Part shown: positions 1 through 64,000 of the stretch, one piece after another
Position numbering within the stretch: position 1 is the first letter of the stretch
Layout of the letters: each line of letters starts with the position of its first letter
Sequence record: LT603033.1
Reading direction: 5' to 3' (one strand)
Length of the DNA stretch: 64,000 bases
Notes under the pieces: generated by a model
Told to the model about the DNA's origin: nothing
Database searches by the model: none
What the model saw: the letters and a program-made list of their open reading frames with translations, nothing else
Made by a program: the position numbers and the translations under genes

Positions 1-2
1 AG

Positions 3-236
3 CAACAAATAGCTAAAAAAGTTGATACCGCCTTGGATAAAATGCAACAAGAAAATGCAAAAAATTACCTTGAAACGAAAAAAATCATGGAAGATAATGC
101 TAAAGTTATTGAAACAAAGGTTCCTTTTATTGTAGAACGTGAAGTTTATAAGAATGTATGTTTAGATGAAGATGGTGTAAAAGTACTGAATGAACTAAAA
201 CAAAATTCTCAAGCTGCGAGGAATAAATTCAAATGA
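3..236 (+). CDS. Inner-membrane spanin (Rz-like), C-terminal part; gene begins upstream of the window
   Basis: Frame is open from base 3 (QQIAKKVDTALDKMQQ...). Helical/coiled-coil composition with a C-terminal VCLDEDG motif. Stop overlaps (ATGA) the start of a lipoprotein gene, the usual Rz/Rz1 arrangement. Confidence 0.7.
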   Translation, partial: QQIAKKVDTALDKMQQENAKNYLETKKIMEDNAKVIETKVPFIVEREVYKNVCLDEDGVKVLNELKQNSQAARNKFK

Positions 237-1206: not shown

Positions 1207-1563
1207 ATGAAATCTAAAATCTTTTTACCACAATTAATGTGGCATCTAGCAGAGTTAGATGAAAATGATGAATATACTGACTATGGTGCATGGGATGACA
1301 GTACTGAAACTTTTAAACCAGATGTAAAATATAAAATCATCTGCAATGAAAGCAAAGGACACAGAAGGTGGACTGAAGAATTTGATCTCGTATTTCTTGA
1401 CATGAGCACAAATAAGTTTTATCATTGTACTTATGAACGAGGTTTAACAGAAGATAGACCAGTACAACCATTCAGTACTGAAACTGATGGTGTTAAGTGC
1501 AATGAAGTTTCTGTTACCAGAGAAGAAATTATCACTTATCGAACTTTGTGGAAATATTTGTAA
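1207..1563 (+). CDS. Hypothetical phage protein
   Basis: RBS GGAGA and ATG; 118 aa; no recognisable motif. Confidence 0.8.
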   Translation: MKSKIFLPQLMWHLAELDENDEYTDYGAWDDSTETFKPDVKYKIICNESKGHRRWTEEFDLVFLDMSTNKFYHCTYERGLTEDRPVQPFSTETDGVKCNEVSVTREEIITYRTLWKYL

Positions 1564-1564
1564 A

Positions 1565-1963
1565 ATGCTTAAAGAATTAGATTTTTCAAACTTAGAAATT
1601 ATCAGTGCTGTAAAAAACATTTCCGATATGGGAGATGAGAAAGCAGTTCTTGTTACTATTACTTTTGTAAAAGAAAAAGATAGCTATAGCCATTTAACTG
1701 GCATTGAAGAACTAATTCATAAAACCAATCTTGAGAATGATGGTAAACTCATCAAGCTTCAGGCTTCCTATACGCAAAAAACGTCAAATTTTATAGACCT
1801 AAATAATGTAGTCAAGGTGGTATACAATCATCCTGAACACACATATAGGAATACGACAAGAAATGAAAATGTTGCTAACGATTCGAATATTATCGAAGAT
1901 GTTGAATTCATAAACACAATTTTTGATCGTTGTTCTAAGGATTTAAAAAAAGTATACATGTAA
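1565..1963 (+). CDS. Hypothetical protein
   Basis: ATG 1565 directly follows the stop of the previous gene; the longer track start (1487) overlaps that gene. Confidence 0.7.
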   Translation: MLKELDFSNLEIISAVKNISDMGDEKAVLVTITFVKEKDSYSHLTGIEELIHKTNLENDGKLIKLQASYTQKTSNFIDLNNVVKVVYNHPEHTYRNTTRNENVANDSNIIEDVEFINTIFDRCSKDLKKVYM

Positions 1964-1964
1964 T

Positions 1965-1992
1965 GGGACATTATATGTTCCAATGATATAAT
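1965..1992 (+). promoter_or_regulatory. Sigma70-like promoter GGGACA-N16-TATAAT with extended -10
   Basis: GGGACA 1965-1970 and TGATATAAT 1984-1992. Same geometry as the sites at 13063 and 32062. Confidence 0.7.
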
Positions 1993-2268
1993 GTATATAG
2001 AAAATGACAACGGACATTGAAAAATGGACACTGAGAACCTACTTCTCTTGAAAATGTAAAGGATAGATGAGCTTTACCGTTGTAGCGAACAGCAGAAGAA
2101 ACCTGTTAGAGTACTGGCATTCAAACAAACACGATGTAAGACCACGAATCACGGCGACACGGCTGTATAAAGAACTCCGATAAGCATACAGAGAGTTCCT
2201 AGATAGATGTATAAGGTTCGCACCTTACCAGATTTGCTAAGGGAGTTTAAGAATAGCGGACGCAATTT

Positions 2269-2450
2269 TACAAGAAAGTTGCGTCCAAAATTTGAGAACA
2301 GGTACTACTTTGATCGAATAGAGTTAGTACTGAGTGCTGTTGATGAAAAGACCAGCGACCGTTGCATATGACTGCGATAGAGAGAAACCGAGCAACCCGC
2401 TTTCGCTCTCTAAATTTTGGTACAAGAAAGATCCGTCCAAAATTTGAGAA
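2269..2450 (+). repeat. 30-nt direct repeat pair, 28/30 identical, period 152
   Basis: TACAAGAAAGTTGCGTCCAAAATTTGAGAA (2269-2298) and TACAAGAAAGATCCGTCCAAAATTTGAGAA (2421-2450). Confidence 0.95.
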
Positions 2451-2489
2451 ATTCGCAATTCGATAATATCCGATGCCATCATCGTCAAG

Positions 2490-2515
2490 AGAGACTTAAT
2501 TGTCTCTTTTTTATT
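2490..2515 (+). terminator. Probable intrinsic terminator closing the ORF-less transcript
   Basis: AGAGAC-TTAATT-GTCTCT followed by TTTTTATT. Confidence 0.6.
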
Positions 2516-2652
2516 ACCTTCATTCCCCTGCGGGGGGATGTAATAGTCCTCAACAAATCCCGTCAAGTTTTTAAAGTACATTATCATTTTCAGAAGGAAC
2601 TAGTTTACGAAGTAAACGCAGTGACTTCTTGAGTTACGAGAGAACGAAGTGA

Positions 2653-3081
2653 ATGAGTAACACAACGAAAATATCCGATAAATCCGAATTAACACAAATG
2701 TTATTCAAAGAATATTTTGAGTTTCAGATAAAAGACGAACAACAATTACCACAGCAATATTTGAAAAGAATTAAAGATCCGTCAGTAATTACTAAAGAAA
2801 CTAATTTTTATAATAGTATTTTGGATTTCGTTAAATCAGTTCATACAACAAGACCTATTGTAGTTTTGTTTTTTGATAAATCTATTCCTTTAGTAGTTCC
2901 TGAAAATGTATTTTTTATTTCAGAAACTGATTTAAATAATCAAAGTACTGTAAGTAGATTAAGAAATTGCTTACTTGTAGTATGTGATTCTTCTTTGTAT
3001 AATAACAGAATACTATGGGATAGAAGTAAACGCAATGCAGTTTCGGAAATGAATCCTGAAATTACCTTTATTATTAACTAA
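2653..3081 (+). CDS. Hypothetical protein
   Basis: 142-aa ORF with phage-like composition; weak RBS (GAGAG). Confidence 0.65.
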   Translation: MSNTTKISDKSELTQMLFKEYFEFQIKDEQQLPQQYLKRIKDPSVITKETNFYNSILDFVKSVHTTRPIVVLFFDKSIPLVVPENVFFISETDLNNQSTVSRLRNCLLVVCDSSLYNNRILWDRSKRNAVSEMNPEITFIIN

Positions 3082-3113
3082 ATAATAAGAGAATAACTCT
3101 AAGGAGAGATATT

Positions 3114-3554
3114 ATGGAAGATATTAATGATTTACGACACGTAATGGACTTTATCGGAAGTACTGAAGAAGATAATTCATATGATGAAGTACTATTAACT
3201 TTTATTGAAAATAGTTTGTTTTTAAGTTCTGCTGCACATAACTGGCACTTACAATGTCATTTTTATACAAAGCATTTACAATTAGATGAACTATATAAAG
3301 AATTACCAGAATATGTAGACGCATTTGTTGAAGGTATCATGAATAATCGTGGTGCTTTGCAAGTTGGGACTGGTAATAGTTATCGTTTTACACCAATTGA
3401 AGATTGTGTACCAATTCTTGAAGAATATGTTGAGCAATGCAGAGCAATTCATGATATGCTTGAAGAATCAGGTGATTACGGCAGTGTAAACACATTAGAA
3501 GATATTATGAGTTTTGTTGAAGGAACACTTTACAAACTTAAAGTTTTACAATAA
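3114..3554 (+). CDS. Dps/ferritin-like four-helix protein
   Basis: AHNWHL...KHLQLDELYKELPEYVDAFVE matches the Dps ferroxidase helices (H..HW...H..LDELY....D...E). RBS AAGGAG. Confidence 0.75.
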   Translation: MEDINDLRHVMDFIGSTEEDNSYDEVLLTFIENSLFLSSAAHNWHLQCHFYTKHLQLDELYKELPEYVDAFVEGIMNNRGALQVGTGNSYRFTPIEDCVPILEEYVEQCRAIHDMLEESGDYGSVNTLEDIMSFVEGTLYKLKVLQ

Positions 3555-3561
3555 ACTATAT

Positions 3562-3591
3562 GGAGAGTCACTATGACTCTCCTTTTCTTTT
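3562..3591 (+). terminator. Rho-independent terminator
   Basis: GGAGAGTCA-CTA-TGACTCTCC followed by TTTTCTTTT. Confidence 0.85.
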
Positions 3592-3602
3592 GGAGAAATA
3601 AT

Positions 3603-4220
3603 ATGAAATCGCATGAGTTAGCAAAATTACTACTATCTCAACCAAATCTAGAAATTTATCATTATGATGCAGAGAGTGACTTGCATTATCAGAATTTTGA
3701 TAATAGATTAATGGTTACACCATCTGGTATTTTCACAACGGTAAAACCTACATCAGTTTCTGAAAATGTACTTACACCATACGAAACCCCCCTCTTGGGT
3801 CATGTGCAAATTTTCTTTAAGGATGGTACTATTACTCCAAAATTGGAGGGTTCACATATTCAAACTGTTCTTAGCTTAGAATATGGGTTGGTATTTAACA
3901 TTCCTTATGAAAAGCCAATTGTTTTATTAGGTAAAAATCAATCAACACAATTCTCTAATCAACATGCTGTTTGTTATACATCTGATGATATTGATTTCAT
4001 TTCAGTACTGACAGAATATGATCCTAATACTTGGCATGAAACATGGGAAAATATGTCATATGATGAAGCAATTGAATGTGGTAAAAATTTAGCCAAAATG
4101 TTATTTCCACCGAAAAAAGAACTTTCACAAGAACAAAATGAATCATTTTCTAAAGATTTTCCTGATTCTGAATTCAATGTAAAAGTATCACCTTCTATGA
4201 TTGATAAAATTGAAAAATAA
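3603..4220 (+). CDS. Hypothetical protein, paralog of 4956-5540
   Basis: ATG 3603 has RBS GGAGA; the track start 3573 lies inside the terminator. Begins MKSHELAKLLL. Confidence 0.8.
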   Translation: MKSHELAKLLLSQPNLEIYHYDAESDLHYQNFDNRLMVTPSGIFTTVKPTSVSENVLTPYETPLLGHVQIFFKDGTITPKLEGSHIQTVLSLEYGLVFNIPYEKPIVLLGKNQSTQFSNQHAVCYTSDDIDFISVLTEYDPNTWHETWENMSYDEAIECGKNLAKMLFPPKKELSQEQNESFSKDFPDSEFNVKVSPSMIDKIEK

Positions 4221-4232
4221 AAGAGGTTGAAC

Positions 4233-4586
4233 ATGAGTGATTACCGCGTAACATCTGGACTAATGGCACGTCTTATTGAAGCAGTTCCTGAAGATGATTA
4301 TGAAGCTATTTCAGATCGTCTTTTTGACGCAGATTCTAAACTCCATATTACATATGATGGTGCATTGATTTACAGTACTGATATTGATATGTCTAGTTAT
4401 GAATTTGAGATTTCTTTTGGTAACAAACTAACTACTGAAGAATTCGCTCGAAAATGTGAGCGTGAAGGGTTCTGTATTGATATTAGTTCAGTTCAGCCAT
4501 ATACATCACTGTGGTATGATGGTGCTGATAGTCCAATGTCTACTACATCTTTACAGGATTTTTTAAATGCAAATCAAAAAGATTAA
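4233..4586 (+). CDS. Hypothetical acidic protein
   Basis: RBS AGAGG, ATG 4233. Confidence 0.75.
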   Translation: MSDYRVTSGLMARLIEAVPEDDYEAISDRLFDADSKLHITYDGALIYSTDIDMSSYEFEISFGNKLTTEEFARKCEREGFCIDISSVQPYTSLWYDGADSPMSTTSLQDFLNANQKD

Positions 4587-4959
4587 ATTCCACCAGCATT
4601 GTTCTATACATGAATGTGATGATTGTGGTATACAAATGAGTGACATTTATACAGTTTCCTGTAAAGGTTTCAAATTCACTCACGGTGAACCTGCTTATTG
4701 TTATGGTACAGAAGAAGGTGATATCGAAGTAGTACTGAAAGAATTGTTCCAGTACTTGCAAAGTGTAGGTCATGATGTTACAATACCCACATATTATGAA
4801 GATGATTATGATGCACATGTAGAAGAAAATACATATTATAATCAATTCGTTTATGGTAATGGTTTTATCACATACCTACATGAGAATGGTATTGAGGTAA
4901 AAACTAAGTACACCAGTGATGATTATGATGATGATAATTCTATGGAGATTGAAGATTGA
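4567..4959 (+). CDS. Hypothetical protein with CxxC-like motif (HECDDC)
   Basis: Short overlaps with both neighbours, as expected in an operon. Confidence 0.7.
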   Translation: MQIKKIKFHQHCSIHECDDCGIQMSDIYTVSCKGFKFTHGEPAYCYGTEEGDIEVVLKELFQYLQSVGHDVTIPTYYEDDYDAHVEENTYYNQFVYGNGFITYLHENGIEVKTKYTSDDYDDDNSMEIED

Positions 4960-5540
4960 AAGCAAAAGACTTAGCAGCACTGTTGTTGCAGAATCCTGAA
5001 ATGGAAGTGTATCATGAGCACATGCACATTGATGACATGTGTGACGCTTATTATTCACCAGAAAATGTGTCTGGTATTGAAATTACCCCTAGTGGAGTAT
5101 TCATCAGTACTGAACGTATTGATTATAATTCCCAGCAAGAAATCAAAACTCCACATAATAAACCTCGCATTGGTGCTATTGACCTAGTATTTCATCAGGA
5201 CCGTTTGGTAGAATATGATGAAGACGATGGTACTACCCGAACTGATGTTGAGAATGTAGTTTTTCGTTTTTATAATGCATACGAAGACCCAACTACTGGA
5301 GAAGATTTCTTCCGTGAGCTATTAGAGGATGGAGAAGTTTATGGTCAGGATGGTACGGTTTTTGTACTGGACCCTAACTATGAGCCAGATCACAATACAT
5401 GGCAATTCTATACACCAGAAGATGTAATGGAAGTTAAAGTACTTACTGATCTTGACGATAAATGGAATCCTATGTATACTTCAATGACATATGAAGAAGC
5501 CAAAGAATACTTCGTTTCTAAACTAAACATTACAAAATAA
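4956..5540 (+). CDS. Hypothetical protein, paralog of 3603-4220
   Basis: TTG start with RBS GGAGA. Shares N-terminal, TPSG(V/I)F and (S/N)M(T/S)Y(E/D)EA motifs with 3603-4220. Confidence 0.8.
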   Translation: MKAKDLAALLLQNPEMEVYHEHMHIDDMCDAYYSPENVSGIEITPSGVFISTERIDYNSQQEIKTPHNKPRIGAIDLVFHQDRLVEYDEDDGTTRTDVENVVFRFYNAYEDPTTGEDFFRELLEDGEVYGQDGTVFVLDPNYEPDHNTWQFYTPEDVMEVKVLTDLDDKWNPMYTSMTYEEAKEYFVSKLNITK

Positions 5541-5557
5541 TAAGGATTCACAAATTT

Positions 5558-5839
5558 ATGAAAATTGTTGCAAGTGCATGGATGAAACTACCAGATGGTA
5601 CAACTGCTTTTGAAGAATATGGCTTTGTTGAAAGTGTCGATGAATTAAAGCGTTTCAAGAGTGAAAATGATGATGATGTTTTTGATATTGTATTTGTATA
5701 CCATCATATTCCTAATGATACTGATTATGAACATTATTATTATCATCCTGATTTGTTGGAAACACTTGTATGCGACAACTATCATGAAATTGATGAAAAT
5801 ACAGCTTTACTAATGTTGAGTACCGTATCTCCGGTATAA
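5558..5839 (+). CDS. Hypothetical protein
   Basis: RBS AAGGA; 93 aa. Confidence 0.75.
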   Translation: MKIVASAWMKLPDGTTAFEEYGFVESVDELKRFKSENDDDVFDIVFVYHHIPNDTDYEHYYYHPDLLETLVCDNYHEIDENTALLMLSTVSPV

Positions 5840-5847
5840 GGAGTAAT

Positions 5848-6327
5848 ATGTATAATCTTATAATTATCCGCGAACCATATGAATCTGACAACAGTTCAAC
5901 TGATGGTGAGGTTTTAGTATATCAAAGTTATGAACAAAGTGGCATTGAACATGAATTAAAAGATTATTTACGTCAACATATATATCTATATCGTACAGAA
6001 CCACGTGAACAGTATGGAGATATAATGTTTATCGTAACTCATAATGGTGCAGTAATTGAACATGTAAATATGACAAATAACATGTATTTTCATAATTACA
6101 CTGACACGTCTAAAGAATTAGGAAACGATTTCAAGTCTGTTTTCGATGCATTGCGTATCAATTTTTTTAAAAATGACAAATTCTGTACTGATATTAGATT
6201 AGAAGAAGCAAATACAAAAAAGAAACTTTCTCGAAAATACGAGAGTGATAGAAAAAAAGAACAAGAGATTCAGCGTTTACACGAATTGATGAAAAAATAC
6301 CCTAATGAGGTACAACATGGCTCTTAG
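5848..6327 (+). CDS. Hypothetical protein
   Basis: RBS AAGGAG; 159 aa. Confidence 0.8.
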   Translation: MYNLIIIREPYESDNSSTDGEVLVYQSYEQSGIEHELKDYLRQHIYLYRTEPREQYGDIMFIVTHNGAVIEHVNMTNNMYFHNYTDTSKELGNDFKSVFDALRINFFKNDKFCTDIRLEEANTKKKLSRKYESDRKKEQEIQRLHELMKKYPNEVQHGS

Positions 6328-6655
6328 AGGTTCAAATCAATATAAATGTATTGCAGAGATCAGGAAGAAAGATGGAACACTTGTAGACCGAGCATTGAAG
6401 CAAGAATATAAAGAATTATGTGATGTGGTACATAATGATAGTTATGGTGGGATGCGTCGTCAAAAAATTTATGAATATCTAAAGAAAGGTTTAGAAATTC
6501 AGGTTAATGGTCTTCATTGCATTCAAACAAAAAATGATCCTGATATTCTACGTTTGTTGAAAGAAGATAAGATTGAAATGTTTAATGTTCCTATTTCATT
6601 CTATGGTAATAAACTAAAATGTAAGCATACTTTCTTGAGGATTAAAAATGGTTGA
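6317..6655 (+). CDS. Hypothetical basic protein
   Basis: RBS GAGG before ATG 6317. Confidence 0.75.
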   Translation: MALRGSNQYKCIAEIRKKDGTLVDRALKQEYKELCDVVHNDSYGGMRRQKIYEYLKKGLEIQVNGLHCIQTKNDPDILRLLKEDKIEMFNVPISFYGNKLKCKHTFLRIKNG

Positions 6656-6872
6656 TTCATTTATGAAAAAAATCTTTAAAAAATTACTATCTGGATTTGA
6701 AAAAGCAGTAAGTCTTATTTTCAGTTCAGTTGTAATGGTTATTACAGTACTGGCGTTTTCTCTAGTACTGCATTTTGTACCATTCTGGTTAATCTTTATT
6801 GTACTTATTGCTTTGCTAGGTGCACATGTTTATTATGTTTACCGTGACGCATTGGATGATGATAACGATTAA
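6648..6872 (+). CDS. Small membrane protein with two TM helices
   Basis: Hydrophobic stretches SLIFSSVVMVITVLAFSLVL and FWLIFIVLIALLGAHVYYVY. Confidence 0.75.
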   Translation: MVDSFMKKIFKKLLSGFEKAVSLIFSSVVMVITVLAFSLVLHFVPFWLIFIVLIALLGAHVYYVYRDALDDDND

Positions 6873-7370
6873 ATGTATTTGACCTCACTATGTGGGGTCT
6901 TTTTTAAGGAAAATTATATGCTTATAGAAACAGAAACATTTAAGCGTTTTATTGACGTATGTCGTGATACGTGTTTTTGTTATCTTTCATCACAAGAACA
7001 GTTCGATGCAATGAGTGATGTGTTAGGATATCGCCGTTCGGTATTGATGTATTTTGATGGTCCTTTGATTGAAGTTCATGATGATGTGTATTCCCTACAA
7101 TATGTATCAATTAACAATGCGTTCATTTTTATTGCTGACTCGTACTCAATTGTAGTTGAGGAACGTGGTAAAGGTATACCAACAACACACTATATTGATT
7201 GTCAAAGAACTGATTGTGTTTATAGTTCTGGACTAATACAAACACCAATTCCATATCCTAGCATTTATATAAACACACTCCATCAAGAAATTATTGAGTA
7301 CTGTAATAGTATTTCTGATACAGATACACAGTATTTTCCTATTGTATTATTGAAAGGAGTTAGAACATGA
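6873..7370 (+). CDS. Hypothetical protein (true start possibly 6918)
   Basis: AAGGA RBS precedes the internal ATG of MLIETE. Confidence 0.7.
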   Translation: MYLTSLCGVFFKENYMLIETETFKRFIDVCRDTCFCYLSSQEQFDAMSDVLGYRRSVLMYFDGPLIEVHDDVYSLQYVSINNAFIFIADSYSIVVEERGKGIPTTHYIDCQRTDCVYSSGLIQTPIPYPSIYINTLHQEIIEYCNSISDTDTQYFPIVLLKGVRT

Positions 7371-7756
7371 GATGGAAGAAACGTCACATTAAGCGTTTTG
7401 AGAAAATAATTAAAAAATATTACTCACATAAGTTAGATCCGATGATTCTTCAGCTAAGGACCAGTATTTTTGATAGACGTTATCCGCAGTGTTTAGAATC
7501 GTACAGTCGTAAACGTTACAAGAATGAATACCTGGTATATCGTTATGATTTATCAGAATTCTTTTTGAATACTCGCGTATCTGTACCCATCAGACTGTAC
7601 TCAAGGGTAAAACGAAGTAGGGTTCAAGATATCACTTATGGTTATCTTATGCTTGAGATTAATGAACTCAATGAAAAAACAGGTAGAAATTTCAGTACTT
7701 TATGTCTGGAAAACAATGATATCATAAAAAGAATTATAGAAGATTTGGGCAAGTAG
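7367..7756 (+). CDS. Hypothetical basic protein
   Basis: ATGA overlap with the upstream gene; RBS AAGGAG. Confidence 0.75.
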   Translation: MRWKKRHIKRFEKIIKKYYSHKLDPMILQLRTSIFDRRYPQCLESYSRKRYKNEYLVYRYDLSEFFLNTRVSVPIRLYSRVKRSRVQDITYGYLMLEINELNEKTGRNFSTLCLENNDIIKRIIEDLGK

Positions 7757-7785
7757 GATTTTTTATGCTATAATTGGAGATGAGT

Positions 7786-8130
7786 ATGAAATACATCGAC
7801 AAAGGTACAGTTGAAACACAGTACTGGAATATTCATATTGCTGGTGATATCCAAACAGCAAGAGAGTACACACGAAAGTTTGCATTCAAGCTTGGATTTT
7901 GTGTACAATTGATTCCGTGTGAATACATCTACACGGGTGGTCTTGAAAGTGGAATGTGTGCTCGTATTATACAGTACCCACGCTTCCCAAAAGAAGAAGT
8001 ATATCTCAACCGAGATGTATTAAACTATGCTAAGGGTTTAGCTGAAGAGTTGTGTCAAAAGAGTTTTACTATTGAGCGAAACAATGATACAATCTATTAT
8101 GAAAGTGCCGACCCTTTACACAAGAAATGA
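7786..8130 (+). CDS. Conserved phage hypothetical protein (YIYTGG.E.G...IQYPRFP family)
   Basis: I recognise the motif CEYIYTGGLESG...IIQYPRFP...LAEELCQKSF from a widespread phage DUF-type family; function unknown. Confidence 0.7.
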   Translation: MKYIDKGTVETQYWNIHIAGDIQTAREYTRKFAFKLGFCVQLIPCEYIYTGGLESGMCARIIQYPRFPKEEVYLNRDVLNYAKGLAEELCQKSFTIERNNDTIYYESADPLHKK

Positions 8131-8141
8131 AAGGAAAATAT

Positions 8142-8273
8142 ATGAATGGACTAAAAAAGTTTGGTAAAGATTTTCTAAAGTGCATCCGTTATACATACGA
8201 TGCTAACCCTGAAATGACCGCCATTGTGGGTGTGTTTATTACACTCGTTGTATTAAGCTTTATTGTGGTGTAA
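8142..8273 (+). CDS. 43-aa single-TM protein missed by the ORF track
   Basis: RBS AAAGGA, ATG 8142, MNGLKKFGKDFLKCIRYTYDANPEMTAIVGVFITLVVLSFIVV*. Fills the intergenic gap exactly. Confidence 0.7.
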   Translation: MNGLKKFGKDFLKCIRYTYDANPEMTAIVGVFITLVVLSFIVV

Positions 8274-8276
8274 AAT

Positions 8277-8480
8277 ATGATTGAAATTAATGCTGATGTT
8301 TATTGTAGTGCATCACCAAACTACTTCATTTATGCACTAAGTACATTTGGTGAAACTGAAGGTGAAACTTTTGTTTTAGTAGATAATACTACATGGTACA
8401 AAACAAGTAATAAAATTCCGAAAGATGTTTTAGAAACTTATGTTCGTATTGAAAATAAAAACATATATGTAAATTTATAG
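8277..8480 (+). CDS. Hypothetical protein
   Basis: 67-aa ORF filling an operon gap. Confidence 0.65.
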   Translation: MIEINADVYCSASPNYFIYALSTFGETEGETFVLVDNTTWYKTSNKIPKDVLETYVRIENKNIYVNL

Positions 8481-8487
8481 GTAAAAT

Positions 8488-55455: not shown

Positions 55456-58400
55456 TTACTTAACTAATAATATATTTTTAATATCATTACCACTAACTTG
55501 TAGACTATCAGTGTATACTGAAAGATCTATAGTGTAACTATTTTGTGTGTAACGTTTTAACATATCATAATTACCTAAATTAATTCCATTGAAAGAATAT
55601 GTGGTATTAAGTTTAAAATCATGTTCTGCACTATACATTACACCACGGAGTAAATTATTTGCATTTCTAACTTCAACTTTTTCATATCCAATCGATATAA
55701 TATCATTCATGTTCGCGGCTGAACCGGATAAAACATTATTTCTAATACTATAAGGACTTATTGATTTAGGTTGAGAAACATAGGTTGTATTTTCTTCACT
55801 AATGGTTGTGATGTTAGTAACAGTACCACCAACAACACCGATATACATACCGTCAACCATTGGGAATCCATAAACCCATATCCCTTCATTATTTCTAAAC
55901 GGTTGAATAACACTTGAATCATATTCGATAACGTTGATTTCTAAACTATCAGTCATTTTAGTTCTTGCCAATTCACTAAGAACTCCCGCACCCGTAATTG
56001 GTAAGTTATAACCGTTATCGATAGTAATTCCATCAACATCAAATATTTCATTGGAGATTATCCAAACGTCAACGTCATCTGGTGTTATTCCGTCATTGTA
56101 CTTACCACCATTTAAAGTAGTATCGTAGAAAACATCATAATTAATTACATCAATGGTGTAATTTCTATTTTGTTCATACAATTTAATACCATTCTTGACA
56201 AATTCAGGGTCAGCAAATGTTCTAACACGAACAATGTTCAATGCTAGAGGCTGTACTGGCTCATTTTGTTGTGCAAGAGTGATGTTATCATAACGGAGAA
56301 CTGCACCAGTACTCTCATCAATCAATTCAATCGTTTCCTTACCTGTATTTCTTACAGTGAATAGGATCGGAGTTGTATTGTTTTTGATGTTAGATACACG
56401 CAAGATTGTTTCCCATGTGTGATTTTGATATCTCACAAAATCTTCACCATCAGGAGTGAAAATCATCACCTTATCACCATCAGATAGGTCATTGTCAACT
56501 ATTTCTGCTTCAGTTAAGCTATTAATAGATCTCACACGATAGAAATATTTTTCATCAAACTTCGATGTTGTTTTATTAATATCATTTTCAATCTTAGCAT
56601 ATGAAGGAATACTTACAATTGCTTCTGTATGTTTATATGGATTGATAATTGCCATACCTTCAGTTTGATATCTGCTGTTATCACGTAATTGTACAAGAGA
56701 TACATTGTCAAACCCATATCCATCAACTGTAAATCTAATTTGACCTACATCACGCCCAGAAGGGTTTATGTCAGATATATCCACAATATAAGGATCAACT
56801 TCATCATCTTTAACTTCCCATTTTATTGAAGAAGTTTGAGATTCCAATGCTAGGTTATCAAATGCATTCATATCATTGAAGTACTTAGCTTCAGTAATAC
56901 TATCAAGTATATATTGATAATCAGAATACATTGGATTATTTTGATCTAGTGGTAAATCATCAAGATTTATTTCAGCTAGTTCAACCATTTCACCATTTGT
57001 GATAAAATAATCTTCCATGAAATCATCAATACTTTGTTCATCAGGTATACTTTGATATACACCGTTAACATTTAAGTAAACATATTTTCGTGGAATCATT
57101 GTAATTGCATAGATATCAATTGGGGTCTTACTAAGAATCTCTTCAGCTTTTTCGTACTTATCAGTAGCGTCTTTGTCGAATAACCCTCTCATACCTGCTA
57201 ATACGTGAATAGCATCAGTATAGAAACGGGTATCACCACCTACTTCATCATAACGATAAACATATACACCATACTCAACTTCAAGTTTAACTTTTACTTC
57301 ATAGTCTGATGCGTCAGGATTTTTATCTTTAATTAATGAAATGTATTTTTGATACAATTCACTGCTTATTTCAAAATATCCATAGTTATAATCATTACTA
57401 GAAGAAAAGCCTAATGGAAGTCTAGTACTAGGATTGTCATTATAAGTAAGTCCACTAAATCCACATCCAACTTCATCGTGAATTTTCTCATCACTTATAT
57501 CTTTATAAAGTTTCAAACGGTTTGCCAATGTGTTATACTGAACATATTGTCTAAGGTCAGTAAACATATCGTTATGCGTTGATTCTTTATAAACACGTTC
57601 CAATGTAGCAGTGAATTCATCAGTTGCTTCTAAATCTTCCGCATGGTCTTTATACCACTGGTTAACGCCATATGCTGTTCCTAGTGTTACATCCAATTCT
57701 GGATAGTAGATTTGCATTTGATAAGCAATAAGAAGATCGAAAGTTTCTTCACTATATTCTGGGAAAGAATATATATAACGTTGTAATTCATAGTTACTAA
57801 CAGCATCCTTTTCATTGGATTGATATTTGTTATTAACACTTACTAATTCATTTATGCTTGCCAAATCTTCATTTGGTTTACACTGAATATTATCATAATG
57901 CATAATAATATCAATTTCTTGGAATCTTCTATTTGGTGTAACGAAATCACTTGGTAGTGAACCTACCTGTTCCCATTTTTGGGTAATTTCATTAAATTGA
58001 GCGTACTCATAATCCCAAATATCTTTTTCAGTTTTGATCCAAGAACCATCAACGAAAATATATCCATTAGGATCTAAATCATTACATAGACCTTTTATTA
58101 AATCATCATCAGATGTCTTTTGCTCTATTTGTGAACGAATTTTAGTTCTATAAGGTTTAACTTCTTCAAAATATTCAACAATTTGATTAATCAAATTATC
58201 GTTTGAATAGTTTTGAACTAATGATTGTTCCAAACCAACAATATAGATATATGATGTTTTAAATACCCAATCCACAACACTTTGTTCAACATGTACATAT
58301 TTGACCATATCAAAAACAATTTCGCTTTGATGTAAATCGAAAGAATTTTTGAGTAAAGCTAGTGCTTTACGAACGTTGATTTCACGATTGCTTAGTGAAC

Positions 58401-61400
58401 CATTATCATTATGAACACTATAATCTGCGTAAAGCATATCATTGAGTTCAACTGTACTGTTTTCACGACCAATCGCTTTCCAATAAATTGAATCGCGTGA
58501 TTGTGATTTAATATACAATGTCCAAATGTTTTCACTATCGGTAACTCTGATAATATCGCCAACTTGGTAGTTTTTAGTATTAGCATCTTCTAAGCTTGAC
58601 TCTTGAGTATAAGTCGTGTTACTATCATATCCAACATCATACCAATCAGCATATGACCAGTACTGAGTCATGTCTAATGAAGTTCCTAGTGATTCAACAT
58701 AATCAGATTGTTTAATCATTTTATGTTGTCCCTCACCTTTGTTCTCTAACGTTATAGTAACAACACTACCCGCGTTTGCTGGACTATTCATTAACTGAAT
58801 ATATCCATTTTCGTCGAAGTGAATAAAATAAACAGCACTAGAAGTTAATGGATTTGGTAGATATCCACTAGTACTTAAAATAACAGCGTCATTTTCTTTA
58901 AATTTATCACTTTCAACTGCAATAACTAATTCATTATTGTAAGACAAGACACGGAAAGAAACTTCATTAGGGTTAACTTCAGTGGTTTTAACATTAAACA
59001 CATCTTCCATAACAACACTATTAGTGGTTATGTTTTGTGATCTATAATAATTATTAGCACTTTCTACAAAGTTTCTACGAGCTTCTATAACATTTTGGAA
59101 CCAAGTTTTGTTTGATCCTAAACCGTTATCAACATCTGGATATAATAAATTAATCACAGAACCTGATTCAGTAGTTTCTTGTCCAATTAAAGAATTCCAC
59201 ATTGAATCCCAAATTAGAGGGTTAAAGTTATAACTATCACCTTCCTTGCATAGTTGGTACTGATCATGTTTAACAACTTCAGTATTATCCATGTAATAAG
59301 AAATTGTCAAAATACTAGTATCATCATTAACTTTAAACTGCATATTACTAAGAATAAACGAGTTTTCATTGATTGGTGCAAACCAAGGAATGTTTAACTG
59401 TGATGGATCTTTAATAATACGAGCAATATCAGTACATGATTTTGTTCTGGTATGTAGTGGTGGTACATAAATGGTATCACGTACCCAGAAGTAGTATTTT
59501 GTAACATAAGTATCAGTTGAGCTATCATATTCCAAAAATGTACTATAGTTATCTTCAAGAGCGGTTCCGCTTGGTAGATACATAGTATTATTTTTGTTTT
59601 TCTTAGCAACGTCTTTACAATACTTATCCCAATTATATGGCTCTACTGGAGAACAAACCCATTCCAACACATCAATGGTACTATGTGGTAATAAACGACC
59701 CCAGTTATAACGTTTGTATTCATTAGTTGCATCAATATCAACGTTTCCGTCTGCATCATAAATTGCACGTGTATAATCCAAATAAAATGCAGTACTTGTA
59801 TTCCACCATACTTGACCAACTTTATCAGCACCCCAAGCCTGAATTAATTCACCATTGCTATTATATTGTGCTGGGTCTATTGGTGACGTATAAGTTACGT
59901 TTTGCATTGCTGCACCAGGAATAACCCCATTGATAGGGTCATACACATTTAGATATAATGCAGTAATGTTAGTACGTTCATCATATGTAGTTGGACGGTC
60001 AAAAAAAGTACTTTGTGGTGCTTTGTAACTATACTTTTTGTCAATATATGCTTGACGCTCTTCTGCACTGGCAAAACGTGATACATAACGATACAAACGT
60101 GGACGTGTATCTGGATCAGTAAATTCAATATCAATAGAAGTGTCAAATGGAACTACCATAACTTTAGGATCAGAACCAGCAGTATAATATTGACTTTCTA
60201 CTGTTAAAGTATCTGGCATAAAGTTAGTTTCATCAACAAAATAATAATAATCACCATCTTCAAGTGGTACATTATCAGTTAAAGTTACTTTACAAAATTG
60301 TTCAGCATACACATCGGTATTTTCAATAGGTGTTATAGAAACCATTTGTACATTAGTATCAACTAATTCAAAAATATTCCATAAACCATTTCCGTCTTTA
60401 AACATCCAAACAGATTCAGGGTTTTCACCTTTACCATTAGTGTAAGTTATACGGTCATTATATGCAGTACTGAAATCTTTTGTAGTGTAAGATACTTCAT
60501 CCAATGTTACTGGACCAATATCTGGAAGTTGAATGTTTTCACTTCTTCCACTACGCATCGGGAATGAGAACTTACCATTTGGACGTGTAATCCAACGAGG
60601 ATCTTTACCTTGTTCGCCGAAGTATACAATATTGTTTCCATTTCCATTTGAAGTAGCGTTTACATCAAAAGATACCATTTGTGGTTGTTGTTTAAATTGG
60701 TCATTGATTAGTTTAAATTGAAGGTTTTTCTTACCATCAATATTACCATATGTACCAATTTTAAATGCCCATTCTTGTAATGCTTTATATTCATCAGTGT
60801 CATATGATTTAGAAACACGAAGTACACGTTCTAAAACTTGGTTAGTACCTTTATCGTGAATGAATCCTTTATAGAAATCAACACGACTAACATCACTACT
60901 AATCATACGCTGTAGATAATCACGAGATTGATAACCAATCAAATGGTTTGACAACTCTTGTAATTGTACATCACTTACTGGAGTTTCACTATCATAATAA
61001 TGTTGGAAATCCGACACTAATTTTTCAAATGATGGTAGTGTTCCAGCTTCCAAGATAATAAATCCAGGAGCTTGTAGGCGACCAGTCCATGAACCAGTAA
61101 TATATCCATACATTTTAATTAGTTCTTGAATAGAACCATATGTTGGCTGATAAATGTAATCACCAAAAATAGTTTTATCATCAAAAATAACAGCATGTTC
61201 ATATGAACACAAACTTAAACGAATCAATGCAATGCGTTTATTAGATTCTAAAGTTCTAACAGTGAAGATATTTCCAATACGAGAAGTTTCAATTTCATAT
61301 TGGCGAATACCTTGGTTATTATCATCAAGTAATGACCATACACCACCATTATTTTGCGTAATAGATTGTACTGAACCAAAGTCTGCCCCAAATTTAGCGT

Positions 61401-64000
61401 TTGCAGAACTTGGGGTACAAGAAATAAATTCACCAGTTACTAGAGAATTCTGACTCCAGATCACGAAATCTTTAGCAATAGTGTTCCAATCTTGTTGAGC
61501 ACCACTATCATTTACATCTTCAAAAATCCAACCATGTTCTTTAAGATATTCACCATATCCACAAATAAAAGTATAAACTTCTTGGTAACTATTGAAAACT
61601 TTACCATATTCAATTGAAGCTTCAGACTTCCATTCATTATAATGAACAACATTACGGTTTTCCAATTTAAGAGTTACTTTTCTACCATTTTTTACGGGAA
61701 GTTTATATTTAAATTTAGCACCAACTAGATCATATCCATCAATCTGATATGCACTACCATTCCAAGTAATTTTGATCGCACTCATTTGCTCATCACGGAT
61801 ATTATTAGAACGAACAAGACCAATGGTTTGGTTTTCTTGTGAAATAAGACCGAAAGATTTAGCATTGAATGTTAGCTGATCTGCTTTAGTAAATCCTCCA
61901 ATTTTATGACCAACATTTATATAAGAAGAACGAACTACATCCCCATACTTGGTGGTAATATTTTTATTTTGATACATCAAATGGTCACTTACAAACATTT
62001 GATAACCAATGGTTCTTGTGCTATTTTCACCATGAACTACTGTATTTTTATCAAAATTAATACGCTTACGTGTATCACCATAAAGGAATTGTGAACCATC
62101 AGTGAATACTTCTTTTAAGTTATCATTGCGGGTATCCCAGAAATAGTTAGCAAATTGTGCTGGTTTAGCTTTATACAAAAGCATCATTTGGTCATATGCA
62201 AACAATGTAGTGTTCATGTATGTAAATTCCATGTCACCCATATCACCATATGTCCAAGGTTCTGCTCTATGATTTAAAGATCCAGACACTAAACCTAAAA
62301 TTTCAGGTGCAATATATTCAACCACACAAATATCAATACCAGAAGATGTTTTATTTCCAGTTTTTGTAATTTTGAATGGCTGTACACCAAATCTTTTATA
62401 TTTGTCATATTGACCACGACGATCACCAAATAAAATAGTTCCAGTACTGCTATCGCCAATAGTTCCGTCAATATCCCAAAGACCACTAGGAACTAAATCA
62501 CCTTGCTCATTCATAACAAGTGCTTCATATACATATACAACATCACTATCACGTTCACCAACTTGAACAGCCGTTGGTTCGTATTCTTGGTTCCACCAAG
62601 TTGGACGTTGTGTAAAGCCAAACATTTCCCACGGATGGGTAGCTGGGCGATATGTACCATATTGGTCAGTGTAAATGGCACGCCATGAACCACGTGCAGG
62701 AATTTCAGTACTTTGACCATTAACTACATAATAAGTGCCAGTATAGTTCCAAGTTCTCCAATTGTTAGGATCATAATCATGTGTACTATTACTGATACCA
62801 TTAGTTGCGGTGAAGTTAATGTATCCACGTAGTAATAATGTTTGTTTCTCTTCAGCACTATATTCAGTTTTAGTGAAATATGGTGTAGGGAAAAGGTCAT
62901 CACTATTCAATACTGGTACGTAATCAACATCTTTGAATTTATTATCAATACTATTAAAAATTCTATTTTCTAATTCATATACAACATCATCCATTTTATC
63001 AACACCATTGATAACACGGTATGCTTTGGAAATAATACCAGTATGACTGATGTTATAACAGCTTGGTTTACTACCAGCAGTGAGGAATGTCGCTTTTTCT
63101 GGTACATATGCTTGAAGAATACCTAAGAACTGTGGTGTTGGTGGTATAAATGCACGAATGAATCCAGAAGTACTTCCAACATTATCATAATAGAATGGGA
63201 ATGAACTATCACGTCCCATATTAATAGTAGTTAAAATTGCATCAACAATGTTTGCAGCACTATTTTGTAAAAAGTCTGATGGATTTTCATCATACATACG
63301 AAGCATTTGTGTATTAAATTTATTAATGAATCTAAAATATTCAGATTGCATAAACATAGTTGCTTCAAACAAATCAATATCTTCATTTGCAGTATGTGCC
63401 ATCAATGGAAGCATAGATGCTTCATTTTGGATAATTTTAGTACCTACGCCATTATTAACCAATCCTTTAGCCAAACGTTCTTCATAGTCATTGAAATCAT
63501 CAGAAGAACCACGTGTAATGTTCTTTTGAATAATATCCTGAAAATGTAAAGTGTAGTCACCTTGGTTAATGTATATAATATTAGAATTATATGGGTTATT
63601 TTGTAGGTTGATTGGAACTTCATATGCACCTAATTCTTTATTAGGAGTTACAGTACTGCTATAAGTTCTAATTTGAATAACAGAATCTTCATCCAATTCT
63701 ACAGTACTATCTAGAGTGATGCTTTGTACTTGACCTTTTGAAACATTTTTGGTATATTTGGACACATCAACACCATCAACCACAACTTCAATAATATCAG
63801 AATCATTATCTAAAACTTTTTGTGCCAATTCGAATGTATGGTCATATTTTACAATCTGAACACCATCACCAGTAATTGGATGCCAATCTAGATAAGTTTC
63901 ACGGTCAGCTTTATAGTACTGATATGTTCTATCAACTTCAATAACATATGCATACATACCATCAACTGGTTCTTTAAAAACTTCCATATCATAAACAGTA
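55456..64000 (-). CDS. Giant (>2843 aa) virion structural protein, probably baseplate wedge-type; 5' end is outside the window
   Basis: Frame stays open to the window edge (T-V-Y-D before the track ATG at 63987). W/Y/D/N-rich structural composition. Confidence 0.75.
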   Translation of the reverse strand, partial: TVYDMEVFKEPVDGMYAYVIEVDRTYQYYKADRETYLDWHPITGDGVQIVKYDHTFELAQKVLDNDSDIIEVVVDGVDVSKYTKNVSKGQVQSITLDSTVELDEDSVIQIRTYSSTVTPNKELGAYEVPINLQNNPYNSNIIYINQGDYTLHFQDIIQKNITRGSSDDFNDYEERLAKGLVNNGVGTKIIQNEASMLPLMAHTANEDIDLFEATMFMQSEYFRFINKFNTQMLRMYDENPSDFLQNSAANIVDAILTTINMGRDSSFPFYYDNVGSTSGFIRAFIPPTPQFLGILQAYVPEKATFLTAGSKPSCYNISHTGIISKAYRVINGVDKMDDVVYELENRIFNSIDNKFKDVDYVPVLNSDDLFPTPYFTKTEYSAEEKQTLLLRGYINFTATNGISNSTHDYDPNNWRTWNYTGTYYVVNGQSTEIPARGSWRAIYTDQYGTYRPATHPWEMFGFTQRPTWWNQEYEPTAVQVGERDSDVVYVYEALVMNEQGDLVPSGLWDIDGTIGDSSTGTILFGDRRGQYDKYKRFGVQPFKITKTGNKTSSGIDICVVEYIAPEILGLVSGSLNHRAEPWTYGDMGDMEFTYMNTTLFAYDQMMLLYKAKPAQFANYFWDTRNDNLKEVFTDGSQFLYGDTRKRINFDKNTVVHGENSTRTIGYQMFVSDHLMYQNKNITTKYGDVVRSSYINVGHKIGGFTKADQLTFNAKSFGLISQENQTIGLVRSNNIRDEQMSAIKITWNGSAYQIDGYDLVGAKFKYKLPVKNGRKVTLKLENRNVVHYNEWKSEASIEYGKVFNSYQEVYTFICGYGEYLKEHGWIFEDVNDSGAQQDWNTIAKDFVIWSQNSLVTGEFISCTPSSANAKFGADFGSVQSITQNNGGVWSLLDDNNQGIRQYEIETSRIGNIFTVRTLESNKRIALIRLSLCSYEHAVIFDDKTIFGDYIYQPTYGSIQELIKMYGYITGSWTGRLQAPGFIILEAGTLPSFEKLVSDFQHYYDSETPVSDVQLQELSNHLIGYQSRDYLQRMISSDVSRVDFYKGFIHDKGTNQVLERVLRVSKSYDTDEYKALQEWAFKIGTYGNIDGKKNLQFKLINDQFKQQPQMVSFDVNATSNGNGNNIVYFGEQGKDPRWITRPNGKFSFPMRSGRSENIQLPDIGPVTLDEVSYTTKDFSTAYNDRITYTNGKGENPESVWMFKDGNGLWNIFELVDTNVQMVSITPIENTDVYAEQFCKVTLTDNVPLEDGDYYYFVDETNFMPDTLTVESQYYTAGSDPKVMVVPFDTSIDIEFTDPDTRPRLYRYVSRFASAEERQAYIDKKYSYKAPQSTFFDRPTTYDERTNITALYLNVYDPINGVIPGAAMQNVTYTSPIDPAQYNSNGELIQAWGADKVGQVWWNTSTAFYLDYTRAIYDADGNVDIDATNEYKRYNWGRLLPHSTIDVLEWVCSPVEPYNWDKYCKDVAKKNKNNTMYLPSGTALEDNYSTFLEYDSSTDTYVTKYYFWVRDTIYVPPLHTRTKSCTDIARIIKDPSQLNIPWFAPINENSFILSNMQFKVNDDTSILTISYYMDNTEVVKHDQYQLCKEGDSYNFNPLIWDSMWNSLIGQETTESGSVINLLYPDVDNGLGSNKTWFQNVIEARRNFVESANNYYRSQNITTNSVVMEDVFNVKTTEVNPNEVSFRVLSYNNELVIAVESDKFKENDAVILSTSGYLPNPLTSSAVYFIHFDENGYIQLMNSPANAGSVVTITLENKGEGQHKMIKQSDYVESLGTSLDMTQYWSYADWYDVGYDSNTTYTQESSLEDANTKNYQVGDIIRVTDSENIWTLYIKSQSRDSIYWKAIGRENSTVELNDMLYADYSVHNDNGSLSNREINVRKALALLKNSFDLHQSEIVFDMVKYVHVEQSVVDWVFKTSYIYIVGLEQSLVQNYSNDNLINQIVEYFEEVKPYRTKIRSQIEQKTSDDDLIKGLCNDLDPNGYIFVDGSWIKTEKDIWDYEYAQFNEITQKWEQVGSLPSDFVTPNRRFQEIDIIMHYDNIQCKPNEDLASINELVSVNNKYQSNEKDAVSNYELQRYIYSFPEYSEETFDLLIAYQMQIYYPELDVTLGTAYGVNQWYKDHAEDLEATDEFTATLERVYKESTHNDMFTDLRQYVQYNTLANRLKLYKDISDEKIHDEVGCGFSGLTYNDNPSTRLPLGFSSSNDYNYGYFEISSELYQKYISLIKDKNPDASDYEVKVKLEVEYGVYVYRYDEVGGDTRFYTDAIHVLAGMRGLFDKDATDKYEKAEEILSKTPIDIYAITMIPRKYVYLNVNGVYQSIPDEQSIDDFMEDYFITNGEMVELAEINLDDLPLDQNNPMYSDYQYILDSITEAKYFNDMNAFDNLALESQTSSIKWEVKDDEVDPYIVDISDINPSGRDVGQIRFTVDGYGFDNVSLVQLRDNSRYQTEGMAIINPYKHTEAIVSIPSYAKIENDINKTTSKFDEKYFYRVRSINSLTEAEIVDNDLSDGDKVMIFTPDGEDFVRYQNHTWETILRVSNIKNNTTPILFTVRNTGKETIELIDESTGAVLRYDNITLAQQNEPVQPLALNIVRVRTFADPEFVKNGIKLYEQNRNYTIDVINYDVFYDTTLNGGKYNDGITPDDVDVWIISNEIFDVDGITIDNGYNLPITGAGVLSELARTKMTDSLEINVIEYDSSVIQPFRNNEGIWVYGFPMVDGMYIGVVGGTVTNITTISEENTTYVSQPKSISPYSIRNNVLSGSAANMNDIISIGYEKVEVRNANNLLRGVMYSAEHDFKLNTTYSFNGINLGNYDMLKRYTQNSYTIDLSVYTDSLQVSGNDIKNILLVK

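Follow-up and report, generated by a model that had tools for sequence, protein, structure and literature searches.

An iterated AGTACT palindrome of the RaK2-like jumbo phages and its place in their early promoters

Why should a phage genome that otherwise shuns palindromes carry one of them some nine hundred times? The question is raised by a stretch of 64,000 nucleotides from sequence record LT603033.1 (the window, at its full length), which is identical in sequence to bases 186001-250000, plus strand, of Escherichia phage vB_Eco_slurp01 (hereafter slurp01; Asteriusvirus PBECO4, genome of 348,043 bp). The window is 94% coding and contains early/middle genes, the tail sheath and tube genes, thyA, tail fibre genes, clpA and part of a 9.9-kb gene; its GC content is 34.7%, not the approximately 33% assumed in a first-pass annotation made from the letters alone. 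That annotation described the hexamer AGTACT, together with the octamer CAGTACTG, as a palindrome iterated across the window in the manner of cyanobacterial HIP1. All 16 hexamer positions that it listed for bases 1-6000 are correct, as are its 26 octamer positions, to which four have to be added (17208, 30391, 53219 and 58658). The window holds 119 copies of AGTACT, against 19.4 ± 4.4 expected from dinucleotide-preserving shuffles (maximum 30; a maximum-order Markov model already expects 95 of the 119, a caveat on the excess), and 30 copies of CAGTACTG, against 0.94 in the same shuffles (maximum 4). The copies are distributed as follows.

1..64000, no strand: 119 AGTACT hexamers dispersed over the window at 1 per 540 bp; widest interval between copies 1978 bp, starting at 36925
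AGTACT starts 1-30: 182, 427, 606, 1300, 1474, 2110, 2326, 2944, 3159, 3188, 4004, 4374, 4731, 4751, 5106, 5438, 6746, 6764, 7297, 7694, 7820, 8562, 8600, 8696, 8852, 9126, 10111, 11424, 11447, 12045
AGTACT starts 31-60: 12250, 12688, 13354, 13412, 14434, 14935, 15256, 15643, 16369, 16795, 17209, 17577, 18753, 19264, 19783, 19822, 19921, 20179, 21222, 21435, 21751, 22383, 22936, 23682, 23740, 25602, 26984, 27715, 28337, 28520
AGTACT starts 61-90: 29968, 30392, 30475, 32014, 33194, 33499, 33997, 35159, 35424, 35984, 36925, 38903, 38993, 39113, 39182, 39656, 40061, 40121, 40475, 40535, 40910, 40920, 41420, 41840, 41996, 42350, 42506, 43207, 43753, 44469
AGTACT starts 91-119: 45476, 47077, 48084, 48123, 48189, 48822, 49122, 50132, 50449, 51487, 52161, 52456, 53220, 54834, 54873, 56308, 56880, 57424, 58659, 58870, 59791, 60007, 60466, 62443, 62707, 63169, 63652, 63703, 63915
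1299..63658, no strand: CAGTACTG, 30 copies with genus-typical flanks; starts 1299, 1473, 4003, 4373, 5105, 6745, 7819, 11446, 14433, 17208, 19263, 22382, 23681, 25601, 27714, 28519, 30391, 33498, 33996, 36924, 41839, 42349, 44468, 48122, 53219, 54833, 58658, 60465, 62442, 63651
1471..1482, no strand: full 12-bp extended palindrome TTCAGTACTGAA
25599..25610, no strand: full 12-bp extended palindrome TTCAGTACTGAA
2110..2115, no strand: AGTACT outside annotated coding sequence, in a 690-bp candidate non-coding RNA region
2326..2331, no strand: AGTACT outside annotated coding sequence, in the same 690-bp region
15643..15648, no strand: AGTACT in the intergenic spacer between PSLUR01_00445 and PSLUR01_00446
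32014..32019, no strand: AGTACT across the stop of PSLUR01_00462

Across the whole slurp01 genome, AGTACT occurs 904 times, on average once per approximately 385 bp, where Markov models of order 1 and order 3 expect 100 and 350 copies, respectively; CAGTACTG occurs 190 times (4.3 expected) and the 12-bp TTCAGTACTGAA 16 times. Under Markov orders 1-3 these are the top hexamer and the top octamer of the genome. Of the 64 six-base palindromes, AGTACT alone is strongly enriched in the window (observed/expected ratio, O/E, of 5.5 by base composition; next 1.9), and about 30 GC-containing 6-bp palindromes are absent from it, among them CTGCAG (0 versus 15) and GGTACC (0 versus 11.6). CAGCTG is found once in all slurp01 open reading frames (ORFs), against 62 expected. 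The genome avoids palindromes generally, with AGTACT as the one exception, and displays strong restriction-site avoidance. Restriction enzymes specific for AGTACT exist (ScaI and Eco255I), and their target is not avoided but nine-fold enriched.

The excess is not a by-product of coding. Window coding sequences contain 115 copies of AGTACT, against 36.4 ± 4.9 when synonymous codons are permuted within each gene, a shuffle that keeps protein sequence and codon usage, and 47.9 ± 5.6 when synonymous swaps also preserve dinucleotides; for the 30 copies of CAGTACTG, the corresponding expectations are 2.4 and 6.8. Over all slurp01 ORFs, 745 copies compare with 221 ± 13 under the synonymous shuffle (z = 40). 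The window copies lie in genes on both strands and in every frame (AGT-ACT 66, nAG-TAC-Tnn 18, nnA-GTA-CTn 31, non-coding 4), genome-wide O/E by codon frame is 3.1, 3.7 and 3.9, and ORFs have fewer copies per kb (2.4) than the DNA outside them (4.5). The two shuffles, the equal frame ratios and the denser non-coding copies exclude a codon-pair or amino-acid artefact and bear out the first-pass claim that the motif is genome-wide, frame-independent and no codon-pair effect; an O/E near 1 after amino-acid, codon and low-order controls, the outcome that this claim was staked against, is not what we find. Repeat families are excluded as a source as well: flank similarity elsewhere in the genome marks just 69 of the 904 sites, the other 835 standing in unique contexts. 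Extragenic repeat families such as REP/BIME elements and uptake sequences exceed 9 bp in length and are confined to intergenic DNA or terminators, whereas 82% of AGTACT copies lie in ORFs. The motif pressure extends to the proteins themselves. Specifically, Ser-Thr dipeptides number 710 (483 expected), whereas the reverse Thr-Ser numbers 477 (483 expected); Val-Leu dipeptides number 770 (546 expected), and AGT-ACT spells 369 of the 710 Ser-Thr pairs (110 expected). AGT is the most frequent Ser codon in slurp01 (33%), and an annotated tRNA-Ser with anticodon ACT (slurp01 15634-15725) would read this in-frame half of the motif.

How widely is the motif shared, and are individual sites kept? Expected counts were obtained for 42-kb samples of phages within and outside the clade and for a 50-kb sample of Escherichia coli K-12, and the window was aligned with the syntenic 42-kb segments of seven relatives, the conservation of AGTACT being compared with that of all coding hexamers.

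Asteriusvirus A4: 94 AGTACT versus 12.8 expected; AGTACT conserved 79%, coding hexamers 31%
Asteriusvirus JNE01: 102 versus 14.4; conserved 63%, coding hexamers 30%
Asteriusvirus fEgEco12: 90 versus 13.5; conserved 63%, coding hexamers 43%
Salmonella phage Munch: 85 versus 13.3; conserved 43%, coding hexamers 16%
Mimasvirus GAP32: 102 versus 12.1; conserved 36%, coding hexamers 16%
Mimasvirus XbC2: 107 versus 14; conserved 34%, coding hexamers 16%
Eneladusvirus BF: 105 versus 11.1; conserved 29%, coding hexamers 17%
Alcyoneusvirus RaK2: 96 versus 9.2
PA5oct, distant sheath relative outside the clade: 1 versus 12
CM1, distant sheath relative outside the clade: 8 versus 11.5
rV5, outside the clade: 2 versus 12.5
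E. coli K-12, 50 kb: 3 versus 4.8, or 0.06 per kb

The excess is a trait of the whole RaK2-like jumbo-phage clade, with 6.5-10 fold enrichment across five genera (Asteriusvirus, Alcyoneusvirus, Mimasvirus with GAP32, XbC2 and CBB, Eneladusvirus, plus Munch) whose hosts include Escherichia, Klebsiella, Cronobacter, Xanthomonas, Pectobacterium, Serratia and Salmonella. The motif is about 43 times denser in the phage than in the E. coli sample, where it occurs about every 17 kb. Sites are conserved 1.5-3 times as often as control hexamers and are actively maintained; at the sites that differ, substitutions are distributed among A1, G2 and T3 of the half-site, and C>T or G>A changes do not predominate.

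The unit that is maintained is the hexamer. The sub-words AGTAC and GTACT also exceed expectation, so that the signal forms a graded hierarchy (GTAC < AGTAC < AGTACT < CAGTACTG) and not an octamer that is either complete or absent; under the order-1 model the enrichment rises from 2.2-fold for GTAC through approximately 4-fold for AGTAC and GTACT to 9-fold for AGTACT and 44-fold for CAGTACTG. Given GTAC, both outer bases co-occur at 1.22 times the independence expectation; given AGTACT, the two flanks are independent (190 octamers versus 183 expected). The averaged context of all 904 copies is a weak 14-bp palindrome, tttC-AGTACT-Gaaa. Asteriusvirus and RaK2 favour C as the 5' flanking base (44-47%), and Munch, BF, GAP32, XbC2 and CBB favour A (35-43%), so that the octamer is the Asteriusvirus/RaK2 version of the motif, with a genus-specific C..G flank. 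That the core is the hexamer was missed in the first-pass annotation, as were the clade-wide reach of the trait, the fixed promoter positions and the AGTACT-free zones with polar hemi-sites described below. Spacing between copies is approximately exponential, except that copies less than 10 bp apart are excluded and distances of 20-22 bp are slightly over-represented; the whole-genome spacing distribution shows no regular period, and position relative to gene starts, stops and ORF deciles is essentially flat.

A 5' G accompanies AGTACT in only 6-11% of copies in every genus, two to three times below background, and GAGTACTC, the core of the site of the host protein SlmA, is therefore nearly absent (0-4 copies per sample). 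The SlmA-binding sequence of E. coli, GTGAGTACTCAC, resembles the phage motif in being a palindrome with an AGTACT core that acts as a scattered positional mark (PMC3020112). SlmA, a helix-turn-helix homodimer that mediates nucleoid occlusion, needs G1, T2, A4 and G5 of GTGAGT (PMC3020112). The slurp01 genome has no full SlmA site, GAGTACTC in 4 of 904 copies and GT-purine flanks in 11, against 31.6 expected. As the flank requirements fail, the phage motif is not a SlmA site, and titration of host SlmA is rejected on the same grounds. SlmA-type flanks look avoided in the phage; the rarity of 5' G is either part of the specificity of whatever reads the motif or avoidance of SlmA binding.

Two explanations that act on the DNA itself have to be weighed against these patterns. 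The first is a neutral mutational or repair drive of the very-short-patch (VSP) type, turning near-cognate words into a functionless AGTACT. It would give the same apparent site conservation, and both the inclusion of partial words in the enrichment and the slight depletion of the deamination-type neighbour (O/E 0.86, z = -3.8) are in its favour. Yet the summed depletion of neighbours (approximately 130) is far smaller than the excess (approximately 520), several neighbours are enriched, and the known VSP effect in E. coli is small. Nor would such a drive put the motif at fixed promoter positions, pass over two stretches, of 5 and 8 kb, in each of three genomes that have diverged, or leave 40-46 AGTACA words unconverted in one of these stretches (see below), and we consider it highly improbable.

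The second, which we hold to be unlikely though by no means negligible, would make AGTACT the target of a phage DNA modification, by a conserved Dam-family N6-adenine methyltransferase, a short C5-cytosine methyltransferase or another enzyme, the mark being read by repair, by early-promoter timing on incoming versus replicated DNA, or by packaging; this is the model of HIP1 with a methylated core. The tolerance of some 900 copies while most other 6-bp palindromes have been removed is easier to understand if the site is protected, and slurp01 encodes orphan methyltransferases matching PF05869 (Dam; E = 6e-32) and PF00145 (C5; E = 7.5e-38), the Dam-family enzyme having a 41%-identical counterpart at the syntenic place in CBB. 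Methyltransferases are listed for Sharanji, CBB, GAP32 and RaK2 (PMC11895373, PMC5259590, PMC3622015), and RaK2 DNA is reported to be cut by methylation-insensitive enzymes only (PMC3622015, data not shown there). Protection, however, accounts for tolerance and not for a nine-fold excess or site-by-site conservation. The 5-methylcytosine (5mC) deduced from RaK2 bisulfite data is of CpG type and not at GTAC (PMC3622015), and AGTACT contains no CpG; fEgEco12 DNA is cut as predicted by ten enzymes, none of which probes AGTACT (PMC13070987). Variable sites lack the transition bias of deamination, as noted above, and the one-mismatch words AGTATT/AATACT are only mildly low (O/E 0.86). A drive by cytosine methylation and deamination is disfavoured on these counts, no neighbour being depleted enough, and the proposal in the first-pass annotation of a methyltransferase coupled to methyl-directed repair finds little backing in the same data.

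The fixed promoter positions come to light outside the window. AGTACT density peaks at 6.7 per kb, mostly intergenic, at slurp01 76519-96218, which corresponds to the direct terminal repeat of fEgEco12, experimentally confirmed at 20,993 bp (PMC13070987). This region is crowded with inward-facing consensus sigma70-type promoters, and in 20 of the 68 strong slurp01 promoters (chance 0.5) AGTACT stands at -7 to -9 from the -10 box, 1-2 bp upstream of the hexamer, in the layout TTGACA-N9-AGTACT-G-TATAAT, the remaining spacer being variable. The same position is occupied in 16 of 33 promoters of fEgEco12, 17 of 32 of A4 and 8 of 15 of CBB, where chance predicts approximately 0.2-0.5 promoters per genome. 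A copy overlapping or touching the -35 box (AAAGTAC/TTGCAA) is found in 12 of the 68 slurp01 promoters (chance 1.4), 13 of 33 in fEgEco12, 10 of 32 in A4 and 10 of 15 in CBB, and Mimasvirus CBB typically has both copies, 22 bp apart (AAAGTACT-TTGACA-N10-AGTACT-T-TATAAT). AGTACT is a new element of the early promoters of this clade, and as a symmetric element at a fixed place abutting the -35 and -10 boxes it has the hallmark of an operator. Strong promoters of this type are absent from the 64-kb window itself. The published promoter analysis of CBB carries, in its main text, no mention of such an element (PMC5259590).

Our preferred reading, held tentatively and with a little less than even confidence, is that AGTACT with one flanking base on each side, the 5' one never being G, is bound by a protein of the RaK2-like clade, probably homodimeric, that recognises this sequence in double-stranded DNA. 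The independent flanks, their genus preference, the operator-like positions, the pairing at two helical turns and the conservation of sites all point to a clade-specific homodimeric reader, and the excess of pairs spaced by 20-22 bp counts in the same direction. At the immediate-early promoters of the terminal repeat, such a protein would sit 1-2 bp upstream of the -10 box and often also at the -35 box, approximately two helical turns away, where it would compete with sigma70 and control, most simply shut off, early transcription by the host RNA polymerase, while the genome-wide copies would concentrate it on phage DNA. With a site every ~385 bp in the phage and every ~17 kb in the E. coli sample, the motif would also be a self mark; binding might act through repression, protection, compaction or import. 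That a helix-turn-helix dimer can read this core is evident from the SlmA site (PMC3020112). Among the options raised by the first-pass annotation, a DNA-binding-protein site or a tag separating phage from host DNA fits best, given the operator-like promoter copies, the genus-varying flank and the ~43-fold density.

The promoter positions can also be read differently. AGTACT could be contacted directly by the RNA polymerase holoenzyme, through region 3 of host sigma70 plus the alpha subunit or through a phage sigma70-family factor, the other copies being weak or cryptic polymerase sites that keep polymerase on phage DNA. Consistent with this are the fixed place beside the -10 box and on the -35 box in two genera, the TG of AGTACTGG at the extended -10 position in CATAAT-type promoters, the inclusion in AGTACTnT of TAnnnT, a -10-like hexamer, and a phage-encoded sigma factor with regions 2, 3 and 4. 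Conversely, the flanks averaged over all 904 copies carry neither a TATAAT nor a TTGACA signal, a palindrome is unexpected for a polar promoter element, and we know of no sigma70 contact that reads AGTAC at -19 to -15. Direct polymerase contact therefore appears quite unlikely to us.

Several other features of the genome were noted. Tandem 60-bp repeats, each with TTCAGTACTGA, occupy slurp01 76321-76501 and end just left of 76519, the counterpart of the left physical end of the fEgEco12 genome; their role may be that of a signal for packaging or at concatemer junctions. The inner repeat boundary sequence (..TAAC..T/TAGCGA) is common to slurp01 and CBB. Within the repeat, an 84-amino-acid ORF (slurp01 91014-91268), conserved in CBB, matches the ParE-like toxin domain PF24732 (E = 6e-11). 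On the minus strand, immediately before the early region, lie approximately 15 paralogous genes of about 380 codons each (slurp01 55691-71425); no other large block in the genome's first half has its GC skew reversed. The most depleted hexamers in ORFs, on both strands, are TAAATA (86 versus 251) and TATTTA (56 versus 243). This depletion matches the ATAAATA late-promoter motif proposed for CBB and GAP32 (PMC5259590) and appears to reflect selection against internal late promoters.

Beyond the inner boundary of the terminal repeat, the motif vanishes twice. Gap A (slurp01 96082-101460), which begins at that boundary, and gap B (104113-112398) are free of AGTACT, and the 2.65 kb between them form an island in which 16 copies lie. 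With copies every 385 bp on average, a run of 8.3 kb lacking the motif would arise by chance with a probability near 4e-10. A like two-gap layout recurs in fEgEco12 (20857-26616 and 29016-37647) and A4 (25255-29750 and 31571-38870), although these regions are only partly alignable among the three genomes. Nothing in the first 50 kb of CBB corresponds to the 96-129.5 kb block, and CBB has no such gaps. On its plus strand, gap B contains 45 AGTAC, of which 43 are AGTACA, often as CAGTACAG, and no GTACT; the AGTACA hemi-sites occur in all three frames and mostly in unique contexts, and in the called ORFs of gap B they number 39 against 13.4 ± 2.9 under the synonymous shuffle. Their strand bias is absolute in slurp01 (43 versus 0), fEgEco12 (46 versus 0) and A4 (40 versus 0). 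Each of these 40-46 words is one step from AGTACT, and none has been converted in three lineages differing by approximately 20%, which argues that the palindrome is excluded from gap B and the hemi-site in a single orientation favoured. Outside slurp01 100-130 kb, AGTACA and TGTACT are balanced (approximately 194 and 181; genome totals 279 and 194). All genes of the gap block are on the plus strand, and GC and AT skew across the region follow gene orientation and are uninformative on an origin. The island that parts the two gaps yielded no origin-like repeats, neither iterons nor long inverted ones. The polarity of gap A was rejected as an independent signal, its 11 TGTACT lying in similar contexts of a paralogous gene array; only gap B is robust. 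A strand-reading or one-directional process must be involved there.

A further candidate is that AGTACT is the preferred action site of a two-fold-symmetric phage enzyme, for example a type II topoisomerase (cutting A^GTAC^T with a stagger of 4 bp and called upon at many points of a 350-kb genome) or a strand-specific nickase or primase reading 5'-AGTAC-3'. The dyad symmetry about a 4-bp core, the dense and roughly random copies with near-exponential spacing and the presence in the phage of GyrB/GyrA-like topoisomerase II subunits and a gp61-type primase would all suit it, and the restriction of 5'-AGTAC-3' to one strand of gap B (45 versus 0) is what a strand-reading enzyme would respond to. 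REP/BIME elements as gyrase sites and the pentanucleotide primase sites of T7 provide precedents. This candidate nevertheless leaves the promoter positions unexplained, PA5oct, also a large T4-related phage, depletes the motif, and we know of no topoisomerase II or primase with hexamer-level specificity; we view it as distinctly improbable.

The preferred reading, a clade-encoded binding protein, has its own difficulties. It predicts neither AGTACT-free zones nor co-oriented AGTACA hemi-sites. Searches of 30 conserved early, virion-associated or methyltransferase ORFs against Pfam and PHROG revealed no DNA-binding domain besides the sigma factor. Approximately 750 tightly bound intragenic sites would hinder transcription and replication, so binding would have to be weak, transient or timed. 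Site conservation cannot distinguish selection from biased repair, and AGTAC without a following T stands at about 1.9 times expectation, so that a drive on shorter words could also yield the signal. As a candidate reader, the terminal-repeat protein encoded at 80109-80720 (weak winged-helix match) was rejected, as ~137-kb coliphages also encode members of its family and the motif is depleted in rV5, which is of similar size and was tested in place of the exact carriers. A more ambitious version of the preferred reading would have the RaK2-like jumbo phages, which have no nucleus-like shell or hypermodified bases, mark their own DNA by an AGTACT-reading protein that shuts immediate-early promoters and protects, organises or pulls in the 350-kb genome, the gap B hemi-sites being a directional signal for DNA tracking (second-step transfer, or replication from a fixed start); this we regard as rather doubtful. 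The remainder of our belief goes to explanations that we have not thought of.

Comparison with known systems places the motif among iterated palindromes. As a description, the parallel with HIP1 drawn in the first-pass annotation is apt in every testable feature: shuffle-proof excess, all frames, both strands, presence in relatives and conserved sites. HIP1 (GCGATCGC) is likewise a short palindrome enriched far beyond composition, at about once per 0.4-1 kb in coding (all frames) and non-coding DNA; it too is common to related genomes, distorts codon and dipeptide use and has an unsettled function. It differs in sequence and in belonging to cyanobacterial cells, whereas AGTACT belongs to enterobacterial phages, and CGATCG has no copy in the window. 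To our knowledge, HIP1 has neither a fixed promoter position nor motif-free polar zones. Methylation of the HIP1 core at CGATCG is documented (PMC6604393, PMC6105098), and the enzymes responsible are known.

Classical phage early-promoter operators share with AGTACT a short symmetric element in the spacer and on the -35 box but number few per genome, against approximately 900 here. TF1 of phage SPO1 binds preferentially to phage-type DNA and represses early promoters, recognising a modified base and not a sequence word; like the reader proposed for AGTACT, it is a protein that could tell phage from host DNA. For the gaps we know of no close precedent for polar motif-free zones. The first-step-transfer region and missing EcoRI sites of T5 and the single orientation of all EcoP15I sites in T7 are tricks against restriction, and resemble the Asteriusvirus gaps in that a short site is regionally absent or single-oriented near the first-entering end, beside a long terminal repeat. 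In Asteriusvirus, by contrast, the terminal repeat itself is the motif-densest region, the empty zones start at its inner boundary, and the oriented word AGTACA is enriched (39 versus 13.4), not merely tolerated. Chi and KOPS, over-represented in bacterial chromosomes, are polar words that DNA-tracking machines read; the gap B hemi-sites are strictly polar, whereas AGTACT is a palindrome with no tracking enzyme linked to it, and polarity is confined to gap B.

The AGTACT excess is real, strong, maintained and clade-wide. It belongs with the iterated palindromes, can be tied to early transcription in a way open to concrete tests, and has a polar substructure that the preferred reading does not predict. 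Full-text literature searches turned up no paper on any of these features, neither an account of AGTACT enrichment in phages nor digests of DNA from the clade with ScaI or RsaI. The word gives a handle on how large virulent phages discern their own DNA when they have neither hypermodified bases nor a protein nucleus, since it is approximately 40 times as dense on phage as on host DNA, is conserved in five genera whose hosts differ and is able to alter proteins. The motif is testable in E. coli K-12 because Sharanji grows on MG1655. AGTACT also offers a simple signature for spotting the clade in metagenomes and, beside cyanobacterial HIP1, a second and experimentally easier system for the origin and persistence of iterated palindromes.

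Finally, two of the non-coding AGTACT copies fall in a 690-bp stretch without an annotated gene (window 1964-2652), which has a TATAAT -10-like sequence near 1987 and a terminator-like hairpin near 2489-2515. An Rfam scan of the window returned nothing, and this stretch had no match even at E <= 5. The same unannotated gap lies at the corresponding place in JNE01, A4, fEgEco12, BF and GAP32, and the RNAalifold consensus of the six genomes has 123 pairs, 49 of them with compensatory changes, a covariation term of -9.5 and long invariant blocks. The stretch is a candidate large structured non-coding RNA of the RaK2-like phages.

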